Shown here: piece by piece, positions 19,213 to 45,400 of the stretch
Position numbering within the stretch: the first letter of the stretch is position 1
How the letters are laid out: every line of letters starts with the position of its first letter
DNA from: Magallana gigas
Lineage: Eukaryota
Assembly (NCBI RefSeq): GCF_963853765.1
Contig: NC_088860.1
Location: 34,906,001 to 34,970,000 of the forward strand
DNA: 64,000 nt
Direction of reading: 5' to 3'
Notes under the pieces: model-generated
Seen by the model: the letters and a program-made list of their open reading frames with translations, nothing else
Databases searched by the model: none
Told to the model about the DNA's origin: nothing
Program-made: the position numbers and the translations under genes

Positions 19213-20937
19213 GAGTATTAGTATTAGTTGGTAATTATAAAATGATATTAAAATAAATCAATAGTTTAAATTTGTATTTATACAGATGGATTCGAACTTG
19301 ATTGTTATCATTTCATGGGTATATTATGTCTTTTCAACAACCTTGCTATTTTAATACTCGTCCGCTTTTCAACAGAGGCACGTCGGTGCCATTTAATCAT
19401 TCTGCACTGATCTTGTCAACCGATGCTTGAAAAATCTAGAGGTCTGAGGGAAATCCCCTCATCGTTTGTATTTAAATTCTCAAATTTGTACACCTGAAAA
19501 TATACCCCAAAGTTCACCTATTTAACGACAAAAGGTACACATATACAGTTTAAACTGCGTCGTTTTAATATAAAGCAATATGCATGTCGCTAGAATTCAA
19601 TGATTATAGGAGTAGTTTACAATGCCCCGGGCAGAAAAATCAATCAATCAATCAAGATGAAAATCAATAAAACAATGATCCCCGTTTGCTGCTTCGGTTT
19701 ATCTTACTCTCTCTTTGGGCAGGCACGTAGCATCTTTTGAAAGTGAGATGGGCCAGACCAGTCCTAAAATTGTTGACCAAAAAACCGCAACCCAAGATAA
19801 ACCTAACCCGCGCGCGTGTGTGTGTGTTTTTTTTTTTTGGGGGGGGGGTTGTGTAGTATACCTATAAATAAAGTTTCACTGTTATTTTCCCATTCAATTT
19901 TTTACATTCCTCCGAAAAAAGGGGGTGTAAATTTAGAACAAATGTTTCCTGCGAAAAAAAGTGATGTTATGTGCCTGTAGGACAACTTACAAAAAGAATC
20001 AACAAAGATAAGATTTCAAAAAAGAATCAAAAATATAGTTCACATTATTTAATATAATAACAATATAGCAACAATTAGATACAAAAACTGAACATAATAT
20101 GAATGCGTTATTTGTATAACTAGGCCATTTCGATTGTATCATATTGCTTTTGAGATCATTCTTAACAGAGAATAAATTGAGCATTGATTTTGCATGCAAC
20201 CATCGCGCTGACGTTTCAATGTGAAACGTTTGACTAGTTTGCTACCATTTTAAGCGATGTTGTTCTCGTTTTAAAAAATATGATGAAAAACTGTACTTAA
20301 AATGTTCGTGAAAACAGAATTGAGGATCCTTATTGAATTTAAGAAGCTTTGTAATGGACAAAGAAAAAGACAAGTTAGTCTTGAACATAAACAAAACAAA
20401 ACAAACAAACAAACAAACATAAAAAACAACAGAGGGAACATACCTGTACTCTGTCATGAAAACAAATACATGTATTAATGACTCTATAAAGAGGTATGTT
20501 ATAATTATAACAATTTTGAATTTTCTCTACTATAATGCGATTGATGAAAAATATACACTTGCATAATCGTCAAATAGCAGACGATAATACAAAATGATGT
20601 GATTATATCTTTGTCTGTATCAGACATACGGGGGATGGTGTTTAGGGCCCATTTTGAGGATCCCAAGTTTTTGGCACAAAGAATGCAAAACAGGAGTAGA
20701 TCTTCTGATAAAAGTATCACAGATGTGTCGTTTCACATAACAAACATTCGTTTAAAATACGAATATTGCAATGCCTTGTTTAACAACTAGACATAAACCG
20801 GAACGTTTCTACGCTTGCTAGTCTCTGAAGCGGCACCGGTCAAAGAGAGTTCCGAACGTACTCTCCGTGGCAGAGTATGCCTATCTGTCGTATTTAGACA
20901 GCTACAGATCTGTACCGATCCATATTGTTCATTTTTT

Positions 20938-22245
20938 TCACAGCTTGAAGACGCCAAAAAAGTTCTCGTTTTTGTATCTTTCGTCATACTGAATTTTTCC
21001 GGTATCCGACATTTTGACCCGAAGTTCCTCCCCTTGGTTCAAATATACCACTCTCTGCAGGAAGCTACTGTGGACGGAGGCTTTATTGGTGCACTGAATG
21101 GACGCGGATTGCACGGTGGTGTAACGATTAGACAACCCTTTACCCTTTTCAATAATGTGCTTAGTGTCCTTCAATTTCAATGCCATTACATGTTCTATGG
21201 GGATTGATGGGTTGTACTTGAACGTAATACGGCTGTAAACGTAATAATACCCGTTGGAGGGGATAATGATCGTCCCTCTCTCCTTTGAGAACTTTAATCC
21301 GCTATTTTGGGGAGAGGAGCTGTCTTTGTCCTTTACCCAGTCTTTGAGGAAGCAATGAGAACCATCTGTGCAAAAGAAGAAAAAAAATCTATAAGATTTG
21401 ATACGTTCCATTTTGTGTCCTTTTTCAGAAACGGTCGCCAAGAAAAGAAAAGTGGTTGATACAGTTTATTCTAACAAATAAATACAATGCTCTACTAACC
21501 TGATTGGGGAGAGCCATCGGTAAGATGTAAAACATCTGCAAATTAAAAGAAAAAAAGAAATATCATAACCATCGTTTCTTGCTATACAAGTAAAAATGTT
21601 CATAATGGAATAAATTTATTTCATTTTATTACAAAAAGTTCATCAATGAACAAGAAAAAAGTATTTTCCCCAGTTAAACTTGATTCAAAATTTACCATTG
21701 TATTCCCTTGGTTTCAGATATTTAGCGATGGAATCCACCATGTCTTCGAGAGAACACATTTCGTCTGTATCATATTGGGTAGCGTTTAGTTTGTACGTAA
21801 GGACAGAACACCGGATCTTGGCCTCTTGGACTGTAGGAAGCTCCGTGATCGCGGACAGGGCTGCGGTCTTTCCGGGCGCCGGAACATTATCACCTACTTT
21901 TGGAGACGACTTTGACCGGAAGTTGTCCAAAATCGTATCGTTGTCTGACAACCGGACGAAGAAGACAGCGAAGAAGCCGCAGACGAGAAGGATGATGATG
22001 ACGTTGACAACACAGAGAACACAAAAGTAGATTTTCAGCTTGGTGTAAGATTTGTAAAGGTCCTCCAGTTTCTGCTGGTTTGCGCATAGCTGGATATTGG
22101 AGACACAACTCGGCGCTCGATGCATTCTTCCGAGGAGTTCAGCGGAACTGTCTTCGGTGGATACTGTTTCTCCTGACCCTTCGCTGGAAATTGAGAACTC
22201 TAGTCTCTTCCTTCGCACTTCGCCTTCGATCGGTGGTAGATTCAT
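20938..22245 (-). CDS. TNF superfamily ligand A, type II membrane protein, about 337 aa
   Basis: Coding exons 22245-21696, 21535-21500 and 21365-20938 (550+36+428 nt, phases 1,1). TM segment IYFCVLCVVNVIIILLVCGFFAVFFV. C-terminal TNF homology domain motifs: VLHLT, DW, GYYYVYSRITF, LNQGEELRV, NFFGVFKL. A 5'UTR acceptor at 22462-22463 implies a non-coding upstream exon. Confidence 0.9.
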
Positions 22246-24094
22246 TTTTTCAAGTGCGATATGACACAGGATTTCCTGTCGATTGCGGTAGTGAAATTGT
22301 GGTTATTTTTGTAAAAAGAGTCGGTCTGGATGGGAAAGATTTAAATAGCTCAATGACGTATTTGAAAACCCCTCTTAGCAACAATTGACCACATTGAGAG
22401 ATTTAATCGGATGTACTGTTCCGGTACACAAAATCCTTCGGCCGTGAAAAGGTTGAGTCACCTGAAAGAAAAGAGAAACCTTGAATACATTCTGCTTCCT
22501 AGAGATTTTTTAAAATCCCACATCAGCACTTTCTTTTTTAAAGTGTCCAATTAGAATTCGATATCGATCGTTCTCTAAAGAGGACCGGGTGTACAACGAG
22601 TACTGTTGAAATGCGTACACTGGTTGACTGTCCCAAACGCACTGATAAAATCACTTTCAATACACTACTAATGAAATTTGACCCCTGTTGCTATATGGCG
22701 TATATATACGTATGTACATACAGACATTAAATATGGCAGTTGGCTTACTGCGCTTCGCTAACGAAATATTTACCAGCGTGCGTTGATAACGCATCAAAAA
22801 TGTGAATTAAACAAAAATATTTTTAAAAACTTATTTAACAATAATGAATTACATTGATAAAACTGCCTTACCCCCATAAATTGAGAGAGGGTCGACCAGA
22901 CTCAGGGTTGTTTCGTTTCTGTTTCAGAGAAGACACTCTGTACGTACACTTCTTTATGTGTTTTCTTAAAGTGGTTTTTTTTAAAGCGCCAGAAATAGGT
23001 CAGGGCCTCCACAGCAGATTGGTTTATTTTCGTACGACAAAAAGATCTATCTGCATGTGCGCAGTGGTTTATTAGTAGTCGATGCTAACCTTATATCTCA
23101 TTTTATTTTCATTTCATTTTCGATGAAATTTTCTCACTTGGAAAAAAAAATATAATAACTGCCTTATCAAAAGCTGCCTATTCCACAGAATATATTGTTC
23201 TATGTTATATTTAGCTAGTTTTCGGCATGCGCATGTTCTAAAACAGTAGGAAGTTTTATCTATTTGATACATGCTCAAGATCATATCTGCCCTAGATCTT
23301 AAGTAGGTAGAATTATAGGAATTTCCATGAGTTTACATATCAAAACTAAATTAATGTTGTTTTTTATACAAAAAAAATATGATAGAAGAATAGGATGAAG
23401 ACGATTTCGGAAAAACGGAAAGTTTGGAATATTTATATAGCAAATAATTGTACTTACTTTCTAATTAATTAAAAGTGGTTTATTTGTCTTGCATACATGA
23501 AGTTCATTCGAATTTCACATGAATAATATTTTTAATACAAACGAACAATGACTGAAATATCGTTTGATTTGACTCTGTGATTTGTTTATTCATTTTCCCC
23601 CTTGCAAATAAATAGATGTTGAGAGCATACATTGTGTGCGGAAAACGGAAAAGTTTGCTAATTAGCAGACTATAAAGAGGAAAGAGCAATTATACAAGAC
23701 ATACCGTATCATCGTCGGAAAACCTCGTTTTATTTTTCTTATCCTCATTCAAGCTCTATTGCGATTAGCTCCTTTACTTTTTCGTGAAGGAAATCTCAAT
23801 CACCAATGGGTTCGACGCTTAATTATGCATGCTTCTACTCAACTGAATGTATCCAAGACATATTCTTCGGTTTCATACCTAGTAACTTTGTTTTTTAATT
23901 GAAAATATTAAAATTAATTATAATATTCGAGGAAACTAGGAAAAATCAACGTATTGGTAGCAAGAGTGTTTAACAAATAACTCATCAATCCTATCTTTTA
24001 CATACAATATTTAAGCTTTAAACGAAATTATTTAGTAAAGAAATTCCATATGTATAAGATTAAAATTTTATATATTTTCCTATGTCGTATCAAA

Positions 24095-24301
24095 TACTGT
24101 GGTTTAATTAATTTTCGTGGGTATCAATTTTAGTGGATGTAATGAAAATTACAGTTTCAAGGGTAAATTCGAGGTCCATGATCCTATCAATATAAAATGT
24201 TAGTATAATTTGCACTTCAATGAACATTTAATTTCGTGGATCAACTTAACAACGAAATCCACGAAAATTGGTATTCAACGAATATTGATGAAACCACAGT
24301 A
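24095..24301. mobile_element. TA-flanked MITE (TACTGT...ACAGTA family)
   Basis: TACTGTGGTTT...AAACCACAGTA termini, with internal TTTTCGTGG/CCACGAAAA motifs. Confidence 0.75.
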
Positions 24302-24449
24302 TCATATATTTCTATTACTGAGCTCTTCTCAAGGATATTACTGTATATATATTTGTCTAAAAAACCGACCATCCAGCTGTTCTGAAATGTTCATAGACAA
24401 CTTATTTGAAAAAATAAACCTAAGGCAACCACCGTCCCACTAAACCAAA

Positions 24450-24680
24450 TACTGTGGAATCATTAGATTTCGTGGTGGCTCAATTTTCGTGGAATTCGTG
24501 GGTACTTCTCATTCACAAATTAACATCCCCCCCCCCCCCCCCGAATTAATAAATTAGAGCTATAAAGTCATATTCCTCTTGCATGTATACGAAAATACAC
24601 GAAATTACGCCCCCACGAACCTGTAAAATTTAAGCAATCCACGAAAATTGGCCCCCACGAATTTTAATGATTTCACAGTA
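24450..24680. mobile_element. TA-flanked MITE, related family
   Basis: TACTGTGGAATCATT...AATGATTTCACAGTA termini, with the same internal motifs. Confidence 0.75.
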
Positions 24681-25347
24681 ATAACAACAATACCCCCACA
24701 ACTGTTTGGGTTAAGGACAATTCCGTGACCTTTCAATAGTGTTCAGTATCCAGATCACATATTGTTTGTTTTATAATTGATAATAGTAGGTCAATCGATC
24801 ACGTTATCATTTTTTTTCAAGCTTTATCAGGAAACTTATCAAGTGTAGAGACTGATAATATCGCTCTCTCTTTCTCTAGGGCACCCTTGACATCAATCGT
24901 CCTACTCCTTACAGCTTCCTATTACAATTCGTGAAGGGAAAAGTAGTTCCGGTTAAACTACGTCTCAGATTTTTTGAAAGCCAATTATTGAATGTAAATT
25001 TTTACACCTCCAAAAAAGCTAGAAATCTATTCGTACACACATTGTAGTGTCATTTGATCAAAATGGGTGGTGGGGGTGTTATTACTTAGAAAGATGTTAA
25101 AAATAAAGCCATCTAAATGGTAATTATTAAGTTTCGATGACATTCCTCCCGGAAGTTAGTATAATAATCGCGACAACATTGAGTTCCGGTTGTCAATGGT
25201 TGAACTTACTGCCTACATGTACATGAAAACTAGGACGCTGAAATGTTCTCAAAGGAGTCCGAGAGATATTTTTATTTGCTATTTCCTGTAACTTTTTAAA
25301 TTTAAATTTATTAAGTTAAATAAGTTTGAATCATTCGACCCCTCCCC

Positions 25348-25448
25348 CCTGCATACCTTCATAATTAACATAAATTCTGTGCGCGGATCAAGGGACCCCC
25401 CTTGATCCGCGCACAGAATGTATGTTTTAAATTATGAAGGTATGCAGG
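25348..25448. repeat. About 100 bp palindrome downstream of TNF-B
   Basis: CCTGCATACCTTCATAATT...CTGTGCGCGGATCAAGGG-ACCC-CCCTTGATCCGCGCACAG...AATTATGAAGGTATGCAGG. Confidence 0.9.
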
Positions 25449-25575
25449 AAACATTGATTATTACACCGTATGTAAATAATTTCTGTTTATTTTTATATTT
25501 GTAAACAACATAAACATATACATATACATAATGACAAATAAAAAACAATAAAAAAAAAAGTTTTGAGATCAAGAA

Positions 25576-26859
25576 TTACAATTTGAACATTCCAAAATAA
25601 TTTCCAGTGACGTCACTCGCGTCATATTGCAGCTTTCCCGCCCTTGAGACCGTCACTTTCAACTCCTCTCCTTTCCTAAACTTGGCCACCCTCTGTATGT
25701 AACTGTTGCCACTGGAATCGATCATATCAGTCATCGGGGTGGTAACAGTGACGAACTTCTGAAATCTTTGATTGATTGGTTTGATTCTTATGGAGTGCTT
25801 TATGGTAGTTCGACTCGATCGCTTGCTTTCGCCGTTGTCGGATGAAAATGATAAACGGCAATATAAGAAGTAGAACCCGTCGGACGGAATTCTAATAGAC
25901 GAGTTGGTCATGTGGTATTTCACGGAAGAGTTTGTATCATTGTCTCTTCTCCAATCAGAGATCGTATATTCATAATGCTCTAAAAAAAGGAAATACATAT
26001 ATAGATATTATTTATCAAAAGTCTCGACATCAAAGTGTAAACCTGTGTAAAACCAATTTAAAGAAAAAAAAAAGAAAGAAAGAAACCTCACCATTCCTTT
26101 CGTTTTCGGGTTTTCCACCAACTAAATGAATCACTTCTGAAAAAATAAGAAAATATATTTTATCGAAAAAGTTTATACATCTATTTGCGATTGGTCAAAA
26201 CGAATTATAATAAGTTCTACTACATGTAGTATGTTAAACTTACCAGAGTATTCCCTCGGTCTGACGTACTGAATAAAAAAAATCAACACATTTATTATCA
26301 ATTCATTTTCAATATTTTGTCAGTGTAACATTATTATTATTAGGCTATTTAACCATTAAAAATATTCTAATTTTACCTTAATCAGTGCATCAATCAAGTC
26401 GTTAAAGGTACACGCAACTCGGGATTTCGAAACTTCAGCACCAAGTTTATATCTCAGAGTAGCGCAGTTAATTCCTCCATCGAATCCCGGGGACACTTCG
26501 GCCCTATACAGTTTTTCTGTCTCCCCACCTTTTGGCGAACTTTCACCTTCTTTTGTCTGAATAATTCCTTTTGAAGGCGTCTGATCACTCGAGTCCATTT
26601 TGCTCAAAAATTGAGCGTAAACCAATCCACCAACTGTTGCCATCAGGGCAATGTTCACAAACAGCAAAAAATAGAATTGGATTTTAAGTCTGGCGTTGGA
26701 TGCGTATAAGTCTTTGGCCAGGAGTTCGTTCGTTAAAACTGACAACTCTGTAGCACAGCTTGAATTGCGATTGCGCACTCTTTTTGGTAAAAGTTCTGAA
26801 GACGAGTTGCAGGCGTGCATTTCTTCAATAGCTGCAGACGCAGGTTTTGAAGTCGACAT
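25576..26859 (-). CDS. TNF superfamily ligand B, type II membrane protein, about 313 aa
   Basis: Coding exons 26859-26377, 26268-26244, 26121-26092 and 25979-25576 (483+25+30+404 nt, phases 0,1,1). TM segment IQFYFLLFVNIALMATVGGLVYA. THD motifs: DW, IPSDGFYFLYCRLSF, FRKGEELKV, NYFGMFKL. It is a clear paralog of TNF-A (PREY, QRV, GK[IL]QYD). The micro-exon choices are hand-picked. Confidence 0.85.
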
Positions 26860-29800
26860 GATTACACAGACAAAACAACAGTACTTTGAATAAATTTGTT
26901 AAATAACTAAAAATTTACTACATGGCTTTATCTAACAATTCATCCGGAATCCATAGATATTGTTAATTTTTTATTCGATGAATGATTTCCCTGTGAAATT
27001 CATTTGACGTCAGGATGTGAAATTCTTCGAAGATAAAAATAACTGCGCGTACGTTAATTCTTCCTTTTATGGCTACATGTATATTTTAGATATTAAGCAT
27101 ACATGTATATAATTGCTTACCTCGAGTATTATTAGTGAGTATGTTGATGGATCCCTTCCGCAAACCACCAACACCGAGTCGTCCAGGGAGATGAAATTTG
27201 ATTGGTGTATACCAAACGTATACGTCAGGTCACATGTCGCGCATCAAGTCTGGGTCTTGGAAAACTAAATTTTAAAAGAATAAAAAAATAAATTCATTGA
27301 TTTTAGTTTCGTTTTCGCTGTAACTAACTTGCTTTCTTTTGATCTAGGTGTAATGAAAGGAGAGAGGCGAAACGATTCCACGGCTCGTTCTTTTCGAAAA
27401 TCAAATTTTCAAGTTTTCTTTTTATTGTACAATGCTTTATTTTAGATATTTCTGACCAAATTTCGAAGGTCCCTCAATTTGTCAGGTAACAACTGAGACT
27501 CATAGCTTAAAAATCGTTGTTATATAAACAAGGTTCGTGTCATATTATACACACCAAGGTGTATCTTTGTTTAACTTGTTTGCAAACAGTGATATGAGTC
27601 TCGTGGAAAACCACATGCACAATTAAACTTTCCTACTACTTAAAAATCCATTATCGCGATCGGTTCATATACATAACAACATCAGACTTTAAAAAGTTTA
27701 TATAGAAGAAGATTTTTATATCAATTAGATACATTTTTAATTATTTACCCAAAACTATATATAGTCTAAACATTTGTATATGCAAGTTATATATTAAAAT
27801 ACCCCCAGAGAATCAATTATTTACAATTAGTCAGTTCATTATAGTTGGTTTTAAAATTCAGAACATTAAAATCAAAGAAAGACAATGCGTTCCAGCAGAG
27901 ATATTCTGGGTTTAACTGTCAGCATATATAAATACTAGTATGACCTTGGCCAGTTAAAGACATACATGTACATATTAATCACGTTTTATGATTGACCCTT
28001 TCCCTATGATCTTGTGCATGTAATAATGTGTTGTATGAAAGGAATACTGCGCGTTTACATTTATCTAATATACACCTCACGAACCATTTATATTCTCTAT
28101 GTATTTTCTTACAGAAAGAAATGAACTTGAACTTCAACAAGCTATTAAAGGGTTTATTATGATATACGCAAATTACTCAAATCAAATCAGCTGCGATGTC
28201 AACACCGTGGGGGTTGACACACTTAAAGCGGTTGAGATAAAGGACTTTATTTTTACCTGCACAGGTAGCTGACGTAAGTTTCTCCTCATTTTACCCCTGT
28301 ATAGACTTAACTTAAGGCCTCAACCACAGAACGATATTGGATATCAAAACACAAGATTGTGCCGATAGAATACACTGTCAGGATTATCAAGTACCCTTGA
28401 GATTAAGATTATTGATCTATAGGAGTCGATTTTTGTCCATTTACAGTCGATATCTGTCTTCGACTTTTTTTCCCCACTTCCTTCGTGATGGCTTCCTAGT
28501 TGATTTCCAAGAAAATAAACTTCTCTTTGAAATCGATTTATGGTAATACTATGACAGATCAATACAAATATATAATAGTATTCCTCTTGTGTTGCTTTCG
28601 TGATTCAGAAAGTTACTGAAGTCCTTTGAAGTTTCAAATATGATTACGCAATGTTTCAACAACCCAACCCGGTCGCTTTTTTGGTGGTTTTTTTTTTAAA
28701 GATTATTCAATATTTTCTTAATTTTTTTTAAGTCTACGTACAGTGAAAAATTATCCAATTATTAAAATGAATAATATATTTAATTTATTTTATACATTTT
28801 ATGAATATGTTCTTTATACTGCACATTATTTTTGGTTGTCAGAAAAACATAGGAAAGTTTTTTATAATTTGTATCCATTCCTTTTGTAGTATATGTATAC
28901 GGCGACAATATTTCAAACCAAAGTGCACACTCGTTTTTCTGCATGGTTTCTTTTTTTTATTTTTTTTATTTTTACAACCCAACAGTATTTACACATGCTT
29001 ATATATCTACCTGCACGTGTATATAATCAAGTTTACAAAGGTAAATATCACTTCGATGGCGTCTCGTTTGAAACTCCACACTGACACCTGTCTAACACCG
29101 GGGACAGGAGTGCAAACCATGAGTCATTTCCGCAGAGTTTCAAATATACAGCACGAATCAAATCTACCCCCCCCCCCCCCCGTGGGGCCCACGGTGTCAT
29201 CGAAATTAATTTCTGTTTATTTTTATTTTGACCCTTAATTGCTCTAATGACAGACCAGACATCTTATTTCTCCTCATATTGCTAAGAAAATTCCTCACAT
29301 TCCCAGTTTTTATTCTGTTTCTTTCTTCTGAGGCTTCGAACATTGAAAAGTGCAATGATTGAACAAGGAGCCCTCAAGTCTACAAACCACTGGAACGATC
29401 ATAGAGTCGAAATTAAAGGCAATTAATGTCAAATTGCAAGATTTTTTTCTGTATATCAATTTTGCAATTTTTGTATGAAATGCATATCACTGCAGATCAA
29501 TGGTTTATAATTATATTTACTTGTATAAATTTCTTTTAAAAAAATGCATTGCGATAATTGATTTTTTTCCTAATGCATCCACTAACCAATTTAAATCATC
29601 TTGATAACGTTCTTTGATTTTATAATATTTTTACAAATTTTTAAAAATATGAATTTTGTCCTTTCATTTTTTATGGTACTAACGTAAAATAGTTAATTTT
29701 AAAGTTATAAAAGTTCTATTCAAATGTTTTCCCTTATAATAAGTCATTTTCTTTTATTTCTCAGTGCTGTAAAAATTGCGTAAGTTTGCTCGAATAAAAC

Positions 29801-30406
29801 TAAGGCGTGATTGATCAGAAATGTCGACAGAAAGATCTTTCTGTTCAAACAAGCGAACTTTGCATTGCAATATTTTTAATGTATTTCAAAACGACGTTAC
29901 CTTGATCGACAAATTGAATTACCAGAGGATTAAAGAACCCATTTTGAAATTCTACTGAAGTTTTGAATTCTGAGCTTATTCAAAACAGACTTGTTTTTTA
30001 AAGTATATAATTCTTTTTAATGAAGATACTACCCCCCCCCCCATTTTTACCACCCAGTGGCTATATACCTCTATTTTTTTTCCAACATGTACTCGTGATA
30101 TACGGTATATTCATACATGAAGATACTATGGATAGGTCTAAGTACTTTCGAATTCAACTCTCAAAGCACAAAATTGCCGTTAATCTTAAATTCAAATATA
30201 CATAATTATACGACCGAATTTGCATTTTTATTCTAGAAAAAAGGAGTATAAGATGCACTTTATAGAAAGTGTGGGGGTGTTCATTCTCTTGATATTATAT
30301 CTTGTCTGTCAATGATAAAAGAAACATTGTTCGTCAATATATGGTGGACATGCTAACATTTCATATCAATTTTTGACTATTCGTTACATATTTTTATTTG
30401 TTATAC

Positions 30407-30574
30407 TGTCATGTTGTGAATTTTGAACTGAATTTACCGGGTGGCAGTAAATACAAAATTCACAACATGACAACTAGTTGTCATGTTGTGAATTTTGTGT
30501 TGTGACAACTAGTTGTCATGTTGTGAATTTTGTATTTACTGCCACCCGGTAAATTCAAAATTCACAACATGACA
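30407..30574. repeat. 168 bp nested palindrome built from the unit TGTCATGTTGTGAATTTTG and its complement
   Basis: Five full copies of the unit or its complement plus a partial one. The spacer TTTACCGGGTGGCAGTAAATA is mirrored on both sides. Confidence 0.9.
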
Positions 30575-30907
30575 ATACTTTCATGTTAAATACTGAAATC
30601 TGATTGGTTAAGACGCAGTTAATAATATTGTCTATTACCCTCAGCGTTAGCAACGCACTTAGCAACGGGTAACATTAAAAAATGTTACATGCGCGAAAAT
30701 TATGCGCGTACGGTTCGCTGTAGAATTAACGTTATTCCTATATAAGAGCAGTAAAATTTTCTTAAAAATTAAGACATTCAGTATAACAAAATAAATAGTG
30801 CCTGTTTGGGAGGATAACAGTTGAAATTGACACCCGCGTCGGTTGACAATGGTTTTCTCGGGGTGTCAATTTCAACTGTTACCCTCCCAAACAGGCACTA
30901 TTTATAT
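30575..30907 (+). mobile_element. Hairpin-tailed element copy 3
   Basis: Same head and body as copy 1. The hairpin at about 30791-30907 has a deletion in its left arm. Confidence 0.8.
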
Positions 30908-33900
30908 ATTGGTAATTCAACAGATTAACCTGATTGGTTCGCTTTATGTCACGTGCTTCCAGAATTTTGAAATACGGACTTGAATTAGTAAAACAGGTAT
31001 TCAATGTGGATGCTTCTCAAATTATGCTGATTCTACTTTATGACTTTGTTCTTAACTATGTTTCCAATTAGTAATAACATAAGAAATGTAGACTTCTTAC
31101 ACGTACTTGGTCAATCCATCTATCCAATAAGTAGATTGAAACTTTGTTCTAGATCGAGGTGCTTTTCTGTTGGGTCGATAGAGCTATGGATTCACCCCTA
31201 TGAAAAATAAAGGGTGAGAAAATAGAACTGAATATAACATTAAATTATTTTCATTTCCATGCCCTTATTTGTGTGTTGTGGTATAAGATTCTTTTCCACG
31301 ATTTTTTCAAAGTTTCGTAATTCTATAAATATCTAATTTAGTTGTGTGGGTGTTCAGGAAGCCTTTTCCTGGATTGCATGATGCTCGATTTTACTGAAAT
31401 ATTGGCGTTCACCAGGAAGCGATAGTACACATGATCTCAAAAGAGATTCTCCTTCAACTATACACACGTACATTGTATGTACAGTAGGTTCATAATGGTG
31501 TGATACTGTATGCCCATTTCATGGAATGAAAAAGATAAAGAGTTCCTTTTAAAGATAGGGTTTGATATGAGTGAATGTATTCATTGGTGAACTACTGTGA
31601 TTAATTTTTAATATCATGCGTTATTCATTTGACACCGTGCGGGTGAATACCCGAGTAAGAGGTGACAATATTAGTCTAAGTACTCTTCACGGGTTAATAG
31701 TCGTCCCCAAGGTTAAGAATTTCCCAAAACTTTCGTCTTGATTTAATATACACTTAGCCCCAGTTAATACCCCGGTTGTAACAGACATATGTACATGTTC
31801 AGTGACCCTGGGCTTCCCCAGTATTTTGACACCTGTTTATCTTCTTAATATACATATGTACCTATCTAGGCCAATAGTCGAAACTTGATACATATATGTA
31901 TGTATATAAAGAAAGGGAAGAATTGACCTTGGTTTTGTTTTGAATACCTCTTTTTTTTTTTCTTTTTTTTTTTTATTTTTATAAAGTTTCTGGTCTTTGA
32001 TTTGAATACCTCTTATTATTGTTTTTCTGTAAGTTTTATAAAGTTTCTGATCTTTGTTTTGAATACATCTTCTTTTTATTTTATTTTTTTAATTTTAATA
32101 AAGTTTCTGGTTGTGAATCTGACCATTAAACTCAAATCTAGAAACGTGTTTGTTTCGTAAACCATGGTGCAAAAACCGTTCATTTAATTGATAAGATTTA
32201 TTTGTATATATCATAATAAAGTAAGATCTGCTGCGTCAATTCTATAAGTTTTTTTTTAAGTAATTATCTTGTAGACGTTTTTTTTAAAAGAGGCAATTTT
32301 CGTGTTCATGTTTAGTTAGTCACTTCATAAAATTTTATAACATGGTTTTTTCTGATATTAAAACTTTTAAGATTTAATCACCAGTTTAGTTTAAATAAGA
32401 ATCTCTTCCTTGTTTCAAATGTCTTGTATTTTATTCCTTATTCCGCGAATTCTTGGAAGATTATTCTCTTCCCGTTTGCAATCTTTTAACTTTTTTTTAA
32501 ACCCATGGTGTCACGTACCCTTTCCAATCCTCTGATTTTAATCATTATATCTGACACTGTATTCTTTGTAGAAAAAGGAAGGAAGGTGGAACTGTCTTAA
32601 CAGGAATTTTTATCGAATATTTTTCGGGGTAGTTTTATCCAAATTTAACTGAAGAATACAGTACCTATTGCACTTTGTGTTTGTAAGATATCTTGATGAA
32701 AAATATCGGGCCTATCTTCATACCTAAAAAAAAGATACTGAAAAAGGAAAGCTTACTAATAGTATCTTTATTGAAAAAAAAAATGCTAAAACCTTTAAGA
32801 ATAATAATGTATATATCGTAACGGTTGTAATCGTTTGACAAACGAATAACATTTCTATAATTATTTATAAGAATAAACACCTTTTCTTTATTTTAAATTT
32901 TAATTAAATTTATATATTAAATAATATATTTTGCCTTTTATTATTTTATTTCATTTTACCTATCATTATTTTTTTAAAATTTCTTTTTGTGCCCACATAC
33001 AAATTGTTTCATAATATTTTCGTTCCAATGACTTGTACAACTTTAAAAAAAAACCCCACTTTTTAAAAAAAAAATTAAATGAATGCGTTTAGGTATATTT
33101 TAGAATTGTTTGTATATATATTATGATAAAAAATTTATCGCCAGTTATTCTAATCGAACAATTTAACATTGCATTTTAAACGTGGGTGTCAATACAAAAA
33201 AAAAATCAAACAATCATCATGTAATTGTCAATGATGTAAGCATTCAGGTCCCAAAATATTCCTCTGAATTCCGATGCCATCACTGACCAGTCATTAGAAC
33301 TTGATCGGAGCCAAAATTTCCAAAAATAAGTTTTCAGCTGTCAACGTACAATTTTGGCAGTTGTGAAGAGATGTAAACAGATAAAATTTCATGTCATTGT
33401 TTTTATGTAACAATGGCTAATTTGATTATAAACTTTGACGACCGAAAAATCAAAGCATTGTCATTTATATTTAAGAATACAGTAATCTGGGATTCTAAAA
33501 AAAATTCTATTGTCAATATCTTAATTAATTTTGATATTTGTCATTTATTCTTCACGTACATTAGGTTCGGTCAAATGTACATATTTATCGTTACAAATTT
33601 ACGACTTTTTTTTTTGGGGGGGGGGGGTGGAGTTGGGGGGGGGGGGGGGGATAAACACATGAAATCATAATAAAGTTGCAAGTTGACGCCGTTCGTGCAG
33701 AGTTAGTGTGCACTAAATGACAACAGGCAGGTATTGTTTTAGCATACACAGTTCAAGGCTAGTATTCTATTTATTGCAATTATCTTAAGAATAAAATGCA
33801 AGATCACTGTGTTTACAATTACCCGTACTACTGATCTAAATCTGTGTATGTCAGTCACGTGATATGGGGGGATTCTGTCGGGGTCTCCCTGTGTCATTGC

Positions 33901-35683
33901 ATAGTTTATCCCCGCAGGGAAATTTAATACAGATTCTTTTCTGACTCAAAACTAAGTTAATGTGAAAGGTGTCTCGTGTATTGTGTCAGTTGTCATGCTC
34001 TCAGGCGTCAGAAACCAAACAAAGGGAGGACGTTTTATAATTATGTAATAATCTTGTTTCAACAGATAAAAACGGGGTTCCTTTTTTTCTTTTTTGAGTC
34101 AGATATAAATATACTGATATTTGAGATAGAGGTATACAAAAAAGGTGTTTTTGAGAAAACTATTTATTTTTCTGTTTCACTTTTAATGGAATTGAGCTAG
34201 CAATAGGAAGCGTAGCTATAGAACTTTTATTTGTAAAAATATATTTAAAATACATATAAAATTGAAATTCATCGTCTGTATTTGCGTGCCTGTTCCGTTT
34301 ACTTATGTCGCCTGTTTTCACATTAATTGTTGACGGGGGAGGGCGGTTCTCATTAAAAGTTTAATTTTGAATTAGAATTAACTGAGCGGGTAAAGATTGC
34401 TTTGGCGTGTGTGACGTTAAATAGTGAAAATTAATGACTTTCACTTAAAATAATGACGCTCTCTAGAAGAAGGTATTTTTCATTTTTCATTTTATAGATT
34501 AAATTTAAACACTAGTGTTACATTTCCGGTGGAAACAAATTATAATAAGATATCTTTTCTTTGGGTAAATCGTGATTTCCTGTATTATTTCGAGATTTCC
34601 AAAAAATATATAATCAGGATCTAATTTGATCACAGTTCTCGAATAGTTATCAATATATAGAAACAATTCTTGAAAATCTTAGCAGCTGCCCTTTCATTCT
34701 TAAAATAAGGATACAGAATATACGAAGAAAATGTGCTTATATATCCTACATTAATTAAGCTCAATTTTCCTGGTCCGCTATATTTACAATTTGTAATGAT
34801 GTACACCTACAAGTAAATATGTACATGTAGTTGAATTTTTAAACAAATCGAAAATAAAACAAGGAAGAGAAAATGACGTCATTTTAATTGATTACTGACG
34901 AAAAGAACATCCAATTCCTCGTAAACTGGATTCATGAAATTTATGATAAACTGAACAAAGTCGTAGGTTATCTTTATTTATTTTGAGCATTCACATGTTG
35001 ATATGAATAGATGCAAATGCACAGAACTCATAACATGCTCTTCTATTATTACAGATAAATAAAAAATGAATGTCAACATAGACAAAAGTAAAAGTGCGCA
35101 ATTTTTGTAAACAGTTTGTGTCACCGGAATTCGAATGATAATTATTATAAACATATCTATATATTTCATATATTTTATCACAACTATAGATAACTTAATA
35201 TAATCACCGCATGTCATAACACCCCACGACTGACCTGGGAAGCATTCACAATACATGGCTAGGGGCGTCAGTGAATTTTGATAAAGCCATGCGATACACG
35301 CATGATAACAACAAAATATAGAAACACAAAAGGGTAAATACATGTCAATGTGTCAAATAAAAACAAAAACAGTTCACTGGTACTCATTCATATATCACTT
35401 TCTATGGACGGCCAAAGTGCATGTTTTGTATATAAACGTATACACATTACGATTGTTTGGGTGGGAGAGGGAGGGTGTAAAACAGAGACCCCACACAGTC
35501 TGTGTATTAATGCCGCTCAGCTTGCCCAATATTGTCCGTTGCAACAACATCGGCAAACACAAATTTCCCCATCAACTTCAATATCGTATAACTTTGGGGA
35601 TCATCGCTTGGTTTTTCTAGGGAATACCATGTTTAGGGAAAGTGAAAGGTCTGCCAACATTATGGCAACAACAGAACATTCTA

Positions 35684-37250
35684 TCATCCTAATTTGAACA
35701 TACCGAAAAATGTCGCTTTGGGATCTTGAGAAACTTGACTGATATTTGAAACTTTAACGTAAATCTCGTCACCAACATTTAATCGAAATACGCCGCCTGT
35801 AAAGCTCGTGTAATCGTCGTACTCTTTATTACGCTCCCAGCATTGTGTCCTTACGCTCTTGAGAAGTAGTTCCTCTCCGCCGTTAGGGTAAATCACATTG
35901 TATCGGTAAACGTAGTGATATAGCGTTGTAGCACCGGGACTATTTCCGCCGAAGTACAGCGACAGGAAGTAGACCTGGCTGTATAGATAATAGAGCCCCG
36001 AGTTGTTGACACGGACCCGATCGTTCCTCAGCTGGACACCTCGTATGTGAGCTACTGGGTCCACAGTCAACCAATTGCGAACTGCCGCTTGACCTGATTT
36101 TTAAAAATAATACTTTTTTTCAAATTTCTAAATCTTCATTTTATTTAAAGAATTACATATTTTTTCGTTTATGAACTTTATACAGGAATTTAGGCTTTAA
36201 TATGGTTGAAAAAGTTTTATGAATTTAAAAAAAAATCAATTTAATATATTGATAATGTAAAATTAATGTTTAATTCATGAGTTTGCATGTTATACCTGAA
36301 ACTGGGGTCTGAGGTCCAATTAGAAGGTGCGCTGCAACCTCTCCGTGCGACTTCTGTGTCGAGTTGTTCTCTGCTTGAAGTCTTTCTTGTCCTTGAATCA
36401 TAGCTAAGAACGAACAAACGAAACCTTTTAGGATTCATTTTTATACAAAAACTTACTATGCGAAATACATATACAAATAAGAGTTGTCTTCAGAAATGTC
36501 TATTATTATTCTTAAGTGCGAACCAAATTGATAATGTCGTGAAATACAATTACCTTTTGCGCAGGATACATTCTTTTTCTTTTCTACTATCTGTAAAAAA
36601 TATTAATTGAATCCATTGATAAAAAATCAATAAGAAATATTGAAAGCATTTGTTTATCGCAATTTTTTTACAAGCAGTATTTCTTGTCTATTCAAAGAAA
36701 ATGTTCCATGGCAAAGTCTTTTGAAAATATATAAAACCACAACGTTTTAATCGCAAAGAAAACCTACCAAACCCAAGATGGCGGACGTTTGGTTGGGGGA
36801 GTTTCCGCAGCAGACCTCCACTCCGTTGACCTTTTTCTTACTTAGCTTGGTCAGGTGTTCATTGTCCTCTGGAAACGGTCCAAACTTCAGATCGGCGCAG
36901 GGGACACAGAGTCTCCCCGAGACCCCGCCATGGCCCTCTATCTCGTCATCAAGTTTGTTCCTGAGGTCGGAGATCAGAAGGAACAGAGAAATGACGGCTG
37001 CGGACAGGGCGATGCAGACGACCAAAAGTAATAATGTCACTGTTCTGTATAACGTTGACGGGGAACTGTAACTTCCCGTGGAAAGATAACTCTTGTCGGA
37101 ACTGGTGGAATCGGGGCTCCGGGGCCTTTTGAAGGAACTCTCGCTCCCGGAAGTGGCCAGCGTGAAGTGTATATCCGGGCATTCGCTTGGGCAGGGTGAT
37201 GGAGGCACGAGGGCACTGACAGAGCTACAGCTGCATTGTTTGGTGTTCAT
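35684..37250 (-). CDS. TNF superfamily ligand C, TRAIL/TNFSF10-like, about 345 aa
   Basis: Coding exons 37250-36768, 36590-36554, 36403-36296 and 36093-35684 (483+37+108+410 nt, phases 0,1,1). TM segment VTLLLLVVCIALSAAVISLFLLI. Canonical THD: VAAHLLIG, NW, GLYYLYSQVYF, LLLKSVRTQCW, SFTGGVFRL, GDEIYVKVS, TFFGMFKLG. Confidence 0.93.
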
Positions 37251-42418: not shown

Positions 42419-45400
42419 ATGGAAGCAGTAGAAAAAATAGATATGTCACTTGGTAAGGTTTGCTGTGTGAAATTTTAAACGTTTAAAAACTCAAATATGA
42501 GACAAGACGTTGCAGGTTCGTCGAGAGGGGTCGTCTTAAAGTTTTAAAACAGTTTGTTTTTTTCACGCCAAATTACAAGTTATTAGAAAATAAAGATGTC
42601 ACATATTTAATAATAAACAAGTGTATTGCCAGAAATTGCTGTAGATACTCGTGACTTTTTCAGATTTTCTTGCAAATTATGCAGCTGATATATCCTGACT
42701 ACACCATATTATAGTTGTCATATTATAGTTATCATCCCTGTCAATGGCTGATATTTCGGTTGTAATTTGATATAGGCCTTTTTGTTTGTTTTTTGATATG
42801 CTTTATGGTATTCATTCACTGCTCGTTATTTTATATATCCATTTGGCAAAACTCGGAAATATTGTCTCTAAGTTATAAAAATGTTCCAATAGAGTTTTTA
42901 TGGTTTTCAAGCATATACATGTAGACATTATAAAAAGTAAATTTTGAAATTTTTCAAAGGAGAGCGTTCTTATAGATATATTATTAATGGGAATGTTTTA
43001 AAGAATAACTTCATGAACCTGTCTGTTTCCTTGCTCTTTTGTCACTGGTCATCACTTGGCTTTTTCAGCAGTTCTCCTGTCGTATTTGTTTTGGGTTGCA
43101 GGTTGCACGCTTGACTTCTGCTGAAGACATTACATCAATCTAAGTTCTGCATCAAAAATTGTCTCTAGAATATTGTAAATTTAGTTTTTGAAATATTATC
43201 AGTCCATTTATTTTGAGAATTTGGTAAAACTATTCTCTACCTACAAACCTTTAAAGGCTAGCTGTTACTAGTGTATAACTTGTTTGTTGGGTTTTTTTTT
43301 CATGTTTCGTACAAATAAACAGGACTAGTCTTTAAAAATTCAACTGTCTGTCATAGTTTTAATTTACCAGAGTATTTTTTAAAAGTATGACTAATGTATG
43401 TTTTTTCTTATCTTTCTTTGATTGTATGTCATCACAATGATCACATCATCCTTTCTAAATGACTATGCTCCCATTATATGTGAAACCTTTCTATTAGTTT
43501 TGAAACTGGCCTTCTGAAGTGATGCATCACATAATAATAAACATTATTTCCTTCTAAAAAAAATTTTTTTCTACTGTAACTTGAGAAACCAATGCTCATG
43601 GAAAATTCACATAGCCCATTGTTTTCATAGAATATTTCATACTAATTAACATTTTGTGTCTAGATGTGCCCTTTTATCAGGAAATGTTTGGTTTTTCTTT
43701 ACAGATGACATTATCAAGCTAAATAAGAAACAAGGCAGGGGAGGATCGAACAGGGGAGGGAGGGGTGGAAACCGAGGAGGAAGAGGTCAAGGACAAAGAG
43801 GTCAGGGAAGGAGGGGTCAAGGTCAAAGAGGAGGAAGAGGACAAGGGCAAGGAGGTAGAGGAGGATTTTCCAACAGAGGAGGAGCAAGAAGGGGAAATGT
43901 CAACAGAGGAGGCACAGGGAGAGGGAGAGGACAGGGGTCAGGAAGAGGAGGTGGGGGCATGAGGGGGTCCCGTGGAGGAAACTCAGTAGTTGATAGAGTC
44001 AAAGGAAAGGGTCCAAACAAGTACAAACAGCTGAGGACCAACCTCATGAGGAAGAAACAGTCCCGGGGAGGAATAGGAGTTAGTCCCCTAAACAGAGTCA
44101 ATTCTAACCAGGTATATTGTGGGTTGTGATTGTATTCATGTCTTTTTATGGAAAGAACTGAATTGTTTTATTTTTTTTTAACCTTTACCAAATTCTACAA
44201 AACAATCTAAATTCAAACAAGATTGTGAAAATTACGAATAGGATTTATGTCGACAAAAACTGTTATATAATGTATTTGGTACTTAGAAATTATAGAATTA
44301 ATTTGGGGAACATTTTTTGTTTTACAGAACAGAGGTGCTTCAAATCTTGGACAGAACAGAGGAGCTTCAAATTTGGGACAGATAAAATCCCAGGCATTAA
44401 GTGCTCTTAGACAGGCTAAGCTTACTCTAGCCAAAATCTCTGCTCGAGAAAAAAGAGATAACATTGTTAACCAGAGGAGAGGTATTCAGGTAAGATGAAG
44501 TAAAATATAGTTCAGTTTAAAAGTGAGGTTGTGTGACTATCTGAAAAAAAGGACGTAGCTCTCACCTGAAATTGTTAGATTTTTTTTTTTTGGTGAAATT
44601 AAATAACTTGTAAACTGGCAATGAGGATCAAAATTTTTTAGAAAAGATAAAACAAGTAAAAAATTGGTAGTTTCAAAATATCTATTGCAAAGATCTTGTA
44701 ATTCTAATAGCTAATACCCTGTATTTGTTTCCGCTAAATTTATCTATATCGTACTTTCAGATGGATAGCCAGAATCCCAGAAGAGGACGAGGAGGAGGCA
44801 GAGGGGGGCGTGGCCGGGGAATGGGTAGAGGCGGGGGCCAGGGTGGAGGGGGTAACAGACAGCGCGGGGGTAATCTACAAGGTGGCAGACGGGGGTGGAG
44901 GCAGCCCAGACAGCAGTCCTCAGTGGACAACAGCGGCATCATCACAGTCAGTGTGGAGAACTCACGGCAGCAAACCAATAACTCACGGCAGCAAAATAGG
45001 TGAATTGAATTGAATGTACATTATATTTCATTGACATTTGGTGGGAGAATTACACTGGAGTTCTGTGGCTTTGATTGTTCTCTCCTAAGATAAAATCCAA
45101 AAGAAGTGTTCAAATGCAAATGTAAACAGGTAGTTAAAAATACTGGCTTGTTTTTTTTGTGTGTGTGTTATTGATACCTTCAGTAGCAGTACATGTACCA
45201 TAATGCCTTTTCTTAGTTTTATTTTTCGTTTTCCTTTCAGGCCCAGAATTAACAGAAACAACCTTGGTGCACAAAATGTCAGAGAAGAAATGCTTGTAAG
45301 TTATTTGTAATTAAATATATTAGTGTTTGGATTCTGTGATATTAATTAAGGCAGTTGCAACATATTTCTTAGTAAAAATGACAGTTACCGGTACATGTTA

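Follow-up and report, generated by a model that had tools for sequence, protein, structure and literature searches.

Three type II TNF ligand genes in the oyster Magallana gigas: a TRAIL/RANKL-like gene beside what is very probably an ancient tandem pair

In vertebrates, paralogous tumor necrosis factor (TNF) superfamily ligands can form mixed trimers, as lymphotoxin alpha/beta and APRIL/BAFF do, and the genes for the two lymphotoxin chains, LTA and LTB, lie next to each other. In TRAIL, the cysteine of an "SCW" motif is unpaired and binds zinc on the trimer axis. Oysters have about 22-23 TNF ligand genes, few of which have been studied. For Crassostrea gigas, 23 TNFSF genes are cited (Gao et al., 2015, as cited in PMC12843592), and the oyster genes have been described as lying "in clusters of three or in pairs" (PMC4346834). 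One described type II ligand of M. gigas, TNFSF10 (XP_011453058, M. gigas / C. angulata), is matched with 100% identity by a TNF domain (L003) at 24.02 Mb of contig C8; another, MgTNF-3 (LOC105344501), is encoded by a gene of ~17 kb, has more than 340 residues, and carries single-nucleotide polymorphisms linked to bacterial resistance (PMC11869874). Here we consider a window of 64,000 nucleotides on the same chromosome (C8:34906001-34970000), of which positions 20938-37250 hold, according to the listing of open reading frames (ORFs) and direct reading of the strand, three minus-strand, multi-exon genes for type II TNF ligands, which we call A, B and C.

It is very probable, in our judgment, that these three genes are real and intact and encode TNF-superfamily cytokines anchored in the membrane in type II fashion, with C resembling TRAIL and RANKL and with A and B forming an ancient tandem pair within a small subfamily. 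The cluster is ordinary in kind, being made up of TNF ligands, and it includes an old subfamily that is newly delimited here. We found no individual account of A, B or C in the literature searched, and TNFSF10 at 24.02 Mb is a different gene from all three.

The last exon of each gene matches the Pfam profile PF00229 (cut-off 23 bits), that of A (20938-21441) with 59.3 bits and 4.7e-16, that of B (25576-25998) with 51.1 bits and 1.6e-13, and that of C (35684-36070) with 101.1 bits and 5.7e-29. When all 564 Mb of the genome (29 contigs) are scanned in six frames, the three are recovered among 22 TNF domains. There were no human-looking contigs, and no N runs were touched. Since A and B have the fifth and seventh best Pfam scores of the 22, the original prediction, which called them strongly derived, overstated their divergence. 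All three genes share a layout in which a long first coding exon is followed by the TNF homology domain (THD) in the last exon. None of the first coding exons has a match in Pfam; each encodes a hydrophilic N-terminus and a single strongly hydrophobic stretch at residues ~60-100 (19-residue Kyte-Doolittle maxima of 3.08 in A, 2.10 in B and 3.05 in C), which fits a type II topology. A, B and C each have one predicted transmembrane helix, with the THD at the C-terminus. In A the hydrophobic stretch covers residues 67-102, and AlphaFold places a helix at 55-101 with predicted local distance difference test (pLDDT) values of up to 90. Pfam hits, genome scan and hydropathy therefore agree on three co-oriented type II ligand genes, as had been proposed for this place.

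The gene models were built from GT/AG sites and reading frames (Table 1). They keep both large exons of the two-ORF picture with which the genes had been described, to which small exons had to be added. Strand A of the THD lies on a short exon in every case (VLHL, VIHL and AAHL), and the intron preceding the last exon is in phase 1 in all three. B and C have a common four-exon plan with intron phases 0,1,1. A is without the first intron of this plan, its equivalent of YVRPREYS being fused to exon 1, and its orthologs in C. virginica and Saccostrea echinata are likewise without that intron, with an exon 1 that aligns unbroken. A pearl-oyster-like contig (L028) retains the first-exon end at the place where A's missing intron would sit. 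Seen from the separate 25-nt exon of B, the intron was lost by A.

Four RNA runs were mapped to positions 20900-26880, three of them RNA-contig runs from three studies and one a polyA raw-read run. The joints 21365|21500 and 21535|21696 of A and 26136|26244 and 26268|26377 of B are present in all three RNA-contig runs and in the polyA run, and they coincide exactly with those predicted from splice signals. The polyA reads over the exons of both genes are first-mate-on-plus only, as expected for minus-strand RNA. The intron in the 5' untranslated region (UTR) of A (22459|22870) is visible in two of the runs, and the upstream end of the non-coding exon (23224, from record 9 of X7) is a lower bound. 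The 3' UTR of A extends below 20900 and that of B reaches ~25396. At all four sites where the allele P0086 differs, the exons of A agree with M. gigas XP_011450909.3/XP_011450910.3 (P0111), of which XP_011450909.3 is an "uncharacterized protein" in RefSeq. B is three residues off P0092 and is an allele of LOC105344740 (XP_011450911.1, K1QV98_MAGGI), named "uncharacterized protein" in RefSeq and "THD domain-containing protein" under K1QV98_MAGGI. Searches and folds used the database proteins equal to the models (P0086, P0111, P0092). Both genes are intact in many other individuals, with protein clusters of 145 and 124 members, and in other species. Neither of the outcomes that the original prediction had named as fatal to it, genes that are unexpressed or that are frameshifted in other individuals, was thus found; A and B are expressed and correctly spliced in RNA of several studies.

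A and B are each other's closest relatives in this genome by several measures. Their last exons are 31% identical (8e-21), or 34-37% in multiple alignments, their first exons are 29% identical (E 9e-17), and the first exon of A has B as its sole paralog in the genome. The THD phylogeny bears out the proposed sister grouping: the two join with support of 99/97 when the 21 complete THDs of the genome are put in one tree, and the A/B family is one clade (100/99) in a 39-row multi-species tree that also resolves an oyster A clade (99/98) and an oyster B clade (100/100). A THD profile of A and B, run against 1.84 billion representative proteins, returns 54 matches at E<=1e-3 and seven at E<=1e-10. 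The best matches in oysters are A-type and B-type proteins of S. echinata, S. cucullata and C. virginica, where the orthologs are LOC111135426 (A type) and LOC111135427 (B type); the best beyond oysters are two proteins of Pinctada imbricata, one of Tegillarca granosa, and one metagenome contig. In these sequence matches the subfamily occurs in pteriomorph bivalves alone, namely in oysters, a pearl oyster and an ark clam.

Every member of the subfamily has a pair of cysteines in the stalk with a spacing of 17-18 residues (17 for both A and B), a K-P-[RT]-E-[YF] linker ahead of strand A, and the strand-A exon, and the transmembrane helix of A is nearly invariant between oysters and Pinctada. 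Among the motifs that had been given as exclusive to A and B, DLY..[NY].[RK]LKI.F, the two stalk cysteines 17 apart, PREY, QRV and GK[IL]QYD stand, while FG.FKL does not, C having FGMFKLG. A small-residue pair on the trimer-contact strand is a common feature of TNF ligands, if not a strict definition of them. Such a pair (Gly-Gly/Gly-Ala) is present in C (T-G-G-V) and absent from A (L-Q-R-V) and B (I-Q-R-V). The Gln-Arg that takes its place is kept in all oyster and Pinctada members; Tegillarca has Glu-Gly at this site, more distant relatives have Glu-Gln or Glu-Lys, and in most of the genome's other TNF ligands one or both residues are small (Gly, Ala, Ser, Cys), with His-Gly in L009.

The S. 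echinata ortholog of A, XP_061171352.1 (66% identical to P0086 with 100% covered; THD exon 70% identical to that of A), carries the automatic name "TNF ligand superfamily member 6-like". A FasL-like identity for A was considered on this account and rejected because the A/B-centred profile A3, in which 14 of 19 sequences belong to the family, shows no clear preference for FasL (FasL 2e-18, LT-alpha 2e-17, TL1A 5e-17, LIGHT 2e-16, TRAIL 2e-16).

Gene order points to the age of the pair. In both C. virginica (L032) and S. echinata (L033, L034), A is preceded immediately upstream by a B gene of the same orientation, and this shared order places the A/B duplication before the split of Crassostrea and Saccostrea. 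With respect to Pinctada, approximately unbiased (AU) tests of the A/B split reject none of four groupings (p 0.14-0.44). A tblastx comparison of the C. virginica flanks with the window gave no matches, and no C-type domain was found upstream of B within 10 kb in S. echinata or within the ~6.7 kb that could be searched in C. virginica. Both A and B are under purifying selection. The ratio of nonsynonymous to synonymous rates (dN/dS), summed per exon with split codons excluded and computed against sister-species transcripts (L029, L031), comes to 0.07 in A and 0.16 in B, with dS ~0.63; for the THD exon alone it is 0.06 in A and 0.08 in B, and for the first exon of B, which encodes the N-terminal half, it is 0.24. 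This is the comparison across oyster species that had been suggested for the cluster.

C belongs to another line of TNF ligands. Its best solved relative, out of 83 PDB sequences, is human TRAIL (TNFSF10; PDB 1D4V, 1D0G) at 1.7e-20, and RANKL scores nearly as high (2e-17). C shares with TRAIL the Gly-Gly strand and the cysteine column, its "QCW" cysteine being aligned to that of "SCW"; this agrees with its original description as a canonical TRAIL-like gene. A-type proteins also have a cysteine in this column, whereas B-type proteins have none. In the multi-species comparison C pairs with a Ruditapes philippinarum protein, P0022 (94/96), to which its THD is 47% and its stalk 33% identical (E 5e-15). 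The CxPC...CC stalk of C, a point of difference from human TRAIL, is shared with Ruditapes, further molluscs and a nemertean, and the [FI]VE[KR]K and SCA motifs of its 37-nt exon recur in P0022, P0109 and P0047. The only paralog of C's first exon in the genome lies at 32.713 Mb, ~2.2 Mb away, in the same gene as L002, which is the closest THD to that of C in the genome tree. From gene size and protein length only, this closest paralog of C (L002/L026; C8:32.713-32.730 Mb, ~17 kb) is probably MgTNF-3, which would then be a type II ligand on the same chromosome as A, B and C but a different gene, at 32.7 Mb. C is thus a bivalve ligand of an old and widely conserved type; it did not give rise locally to a young array.

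We also note that the CxPC...CC and [FI]VE[KR]K motifs form a module between the transmembrane helix and the THD, seen in C, P0022, P0024, P0026, P0047, P0059, P0060 and P0109, that corresponds to no Pfam family. Read by eye, the two-cysteine stalk of A and B looks like a reduced form of this module. The common exon plan and phases of B and C, the apparently homologous stalk, and the TRAIL-type cysteine retained by A suggest that A and B arose from a C-like kind of TNF. Descent of the pair from a C-like gene, as originally proposed, is plausible to this extent; the trees do not join C to A/B.

We considered whether the domains of this subfamily retain the architecture of a TNF trimer. An AlphaFold2 model of the THD of A, the one protein that was folded, is a normal TNF jelly roll (pLDDT 86.3; predicted template-modelling score, pTM, 0.83). 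The top 50 Foldseek matches of this model are all TNF-family ligands (TNF, LT-alpha, LIGHT, FasL, CD40L, TL1A, TRAIL, RANKL) at E ~1e-9 and template-modelling (TM) scores of 0.64-0.84, led by TNF, LIGHT, FasL, CD40L and TL1A at 0.7-0.8. Three copies of the THD of A give a homotrimer that scores 0.53, against 0.00 for the best of three controls, a result of the structure check suggested for this cluster that the model may owe to its memory of solved TNF trimers. Agreement between runs is at least 88% of contacts, with a partner pLDDT of at least 69. Among proteins of known structure, 21 of 30 that were solved as pairs of one chain attained this mark, and none of 23 solved as single chains did. 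The modelled interface includes F120-L-Q-R-V-V-Y126 (numbering of P0086:178-337), with the Gln contacting Tyr62 and Phe120 of the neighbouring chain and the Arg contacting His10 and Phe154. In other words, the Gln-Arg pair is in the protomer contact as modelled, and the trimer is still built by the model.

Besides the possible memory effect, several points weigh against reading A, B and C as ordinary trimeric ligands. Only one of seven eukaryotic proteins without an older solved relative reached the trimer mark, and homotrimers might pack differently or less firmly with Gln-Arg at a site where Gly or some other small residue is the norm. The stalk of A is poorly modelled, with pLDDT below 50 for residues 104-160; in the full-length model the tail and stalk are both of low confidence, so that a stalk fold or disulfide cannot be read from it. 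The model of C derives from splice signals, frame and homology, the RNA evidence being confined to A and B. Finally, what is said of receptor binding and signalling by the three proteins is drawn from general TNF biology.

With these reservations, we suggest that A, B and C act in the manner of established TNF ligands. Each protein would trimerise through the inner sheet of its THD and be displayed on the cell surface, possibly to be shed by a metalloprotease. A furin-type R-x-[KR]-R site outside the cytoplasmic tail was found in none of A, B and C, and release would for this reason need a sheddase. Their receptors would be cysteine-rich members of the TNF receptor family, from which signals pass by way of TRAF to NF-kB or to cell-death pathways. 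The preference of B for a receptor or partner has probably diverged, as suggested by its loss of the TRAIL-type cysteine and by the faster change in its N-terminal half.

An alternative to independent ligands is that A and B are chains of an obligate or preferred heterotrimer, comparable to lymphotoxin alpha/beta and held together by the co-conserved Gln-Arg interface. A and B are adjacent genes, as LTA and LTB are, and B-then-A on one strand is kept in three oyster genera; the transcripts occur in the same RNA libraries, the Gln-Arg is retained in both lineages inside the predicted protomer contact, and the axis cysteine is lost in B and kept in A. However, presence in one bulk library does not place two transcripts in one cell, many old tandem pairs encode TNF ligands that each form homotrimers on their own, and A alone passes the homotrimer model. 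We therefore regard a mixed trimer as unlikely, and the mixing of A and B is conjectural here. If true, protostomes would have invented a mixed ligand of the lymphotoxin kind independently, and its genes would have stayed linked since at least the common ancestor of Crassostrea and Saccostrea.

It is less likely still, to the point of being improbable, that one of the two, B (or A), does not signal and damps the other ligand as a decoy or dominant-negative subunit. The faster evolution of B's N-terminal half (dN/dS 0.24) would fit such a role, as would its loss of the TRAIL-type cysteine and, in this genome, of the stalk N-glycosylation site. Against this, the THD exon of B is as constrained as that of A (0.08 and 0.06), and B is conserved across Ostreidae with no mark of inactivity.

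The frame of the original prediction, in which immune diversification drove a single C-like gene to expand in tandem, recently and in this lineage only, into A, B and C, is barely tenable and is contradicted by the ortholog trees: oyster TNF genes are indeed reported to cluster in threes or to lie in pairs (PMC4346834) and young arrays exist on this chromosome, such as seven near-identical domains at 19.9-20.04 Mb, but A and B are only ~31-37% identical, have 1:1 orthologs that form a B-A pair in C. virginica and Saccostrea and relatives in Pinctada and Tegillarca, and are under purifying, not diversifying, selection, while C pairs with the Ruditapes protein and the 32.7 Mb gene and not with A/B.

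Table 1. Features of genes A, B and C, in positions of the window.
Feature	Positions	Strand	Content or basis
Gene A model	22245-21696, 21535-21500, 21365-20938	minus	337 aa
A non-coding 5' exon	22870..23224	minus	RNA contigs of runs X7 and X8 join 22459 to 22870 (410 skipped; CT..AC = minus-strand GT..AG)
A first coding exon, ATG at 22245	21696..22459	minus	Cytoplasmic tail, transmembrane helix, stalk with two Cys 17 apart, PREY; ORF, donor site, joint 21535|21696 in three RNA-contig runs and polyA reads
A 36-nt exon, THD strand A (VLHLTDG...)	21500..21535	minus	Joints 21365|21500 and 21535|21696; contained in XP_011450909.3 (P0111)
A last coding exon, most of THD and stop	20938..21365	minus	Pfam 4.7e-16, RNA pieces and depth, model pLDDT 86
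Gene B model	26859-26377, 26268-26244, 26136-26092, 25979-25576	minus	318 aa
B first coding exon (tail, transmembrane helix, stalk with two Cys 17 apart)	26377..26859	minus	ORF, joint 26268|26377
B 25-nt exon (YVRPREYS)	26244..26268	minus	Joints 26136|26244 and 26268|26377 in three RNA-contig runs and polyA reads
B 45-nt exon, THD strand A (VIHLVGGKP...)	26092..26136	minus	Joint 26136|26244; P0092 and K1QV98 span both junctions
B last coding exon, THD and stop	25576..25979	minus	Pfam 1.6e-13; RNA pieces of three runs stop exactly at 25979
Gene C model	37250-36768, 36590-36554, 36403-36296, 36093-35684	minus	345 aa
C first coding exon (Ser/Pro-rich tail, transmembrane helix, CxPC...CC stalk module)	36768..37250	minus	ORF, donor site
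C 37-nt exon (IVEKKKNVSCAK)	36554..36590	minus	AG/GT and frame, model only
C 108-nt exon, linker and THD strand A (EVAAHLLIG)	36296..36403	minus	AG/GT and frame, model only
C last coding exon, THD and stop	35684..36093	minus	Pfam 5.7e-29, TRAIL similarity

The surroundings of the genes hold some further elements. Between A and B, an interspersed repeat at 24100-24700 has very high two-strand RNA depth and numerous loose ends in each of the four runs; it has imperfect inverted arms (24247-24302 and 24449-24504, 73% complementary) and looks like a miniature inverted-repeat transposable element (MITE) or other transposon fragment. The spacer between B and C contains two long hairpin-forming inverted repeats, at 30429-30557 and 30791-30905, one with 55-nt arms (100% complementary, 19 nt apart) and the other with 45-nt arms (98%, 25 nt apart). 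Farther along the window, a plus-strand ORF at 43656-44129 is rich in Arg-Gly-Gly / Gly-Gln-Gly repeats and lies within a region of strong positive GC skew (42-48 kb). On the pearl-oyster-like metagenome contig (ENA ERZ26168041), the family member at L028:9696-10622 has the Gln-Arg, and past its stop codon the last coding segment (GNENCFGIF...) is repeated in tandem several times in degenerate form; the gene caller's read-through product is 308 aa.

All 22 TNF-domain hits of the genome are on one contig, C8, in groups at 5.09-5.28, 17.70-17.73, 19.90-20.04 (the seven near-identical domains), 22.08-22.09, 23.90-24.02, 32.73 and 34.93-34.94 Mb, and the whole TNF-ligand family thus appears to be confined to one chromosome. 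A, B and C do not reveal a new kind of system. They do correct the idea that clustered oyster TNF genes are recent expansions, for not every such cluster is. Two gene models known as "uncharacterized protein" become a defined, old and selectively maintained TNF subfamily with clear sequence marks, and the A/B pair, set apart from the young arrays on the same chromosome, offers a concrete pair of genes for questions of receptor choice and of mixed trimers.

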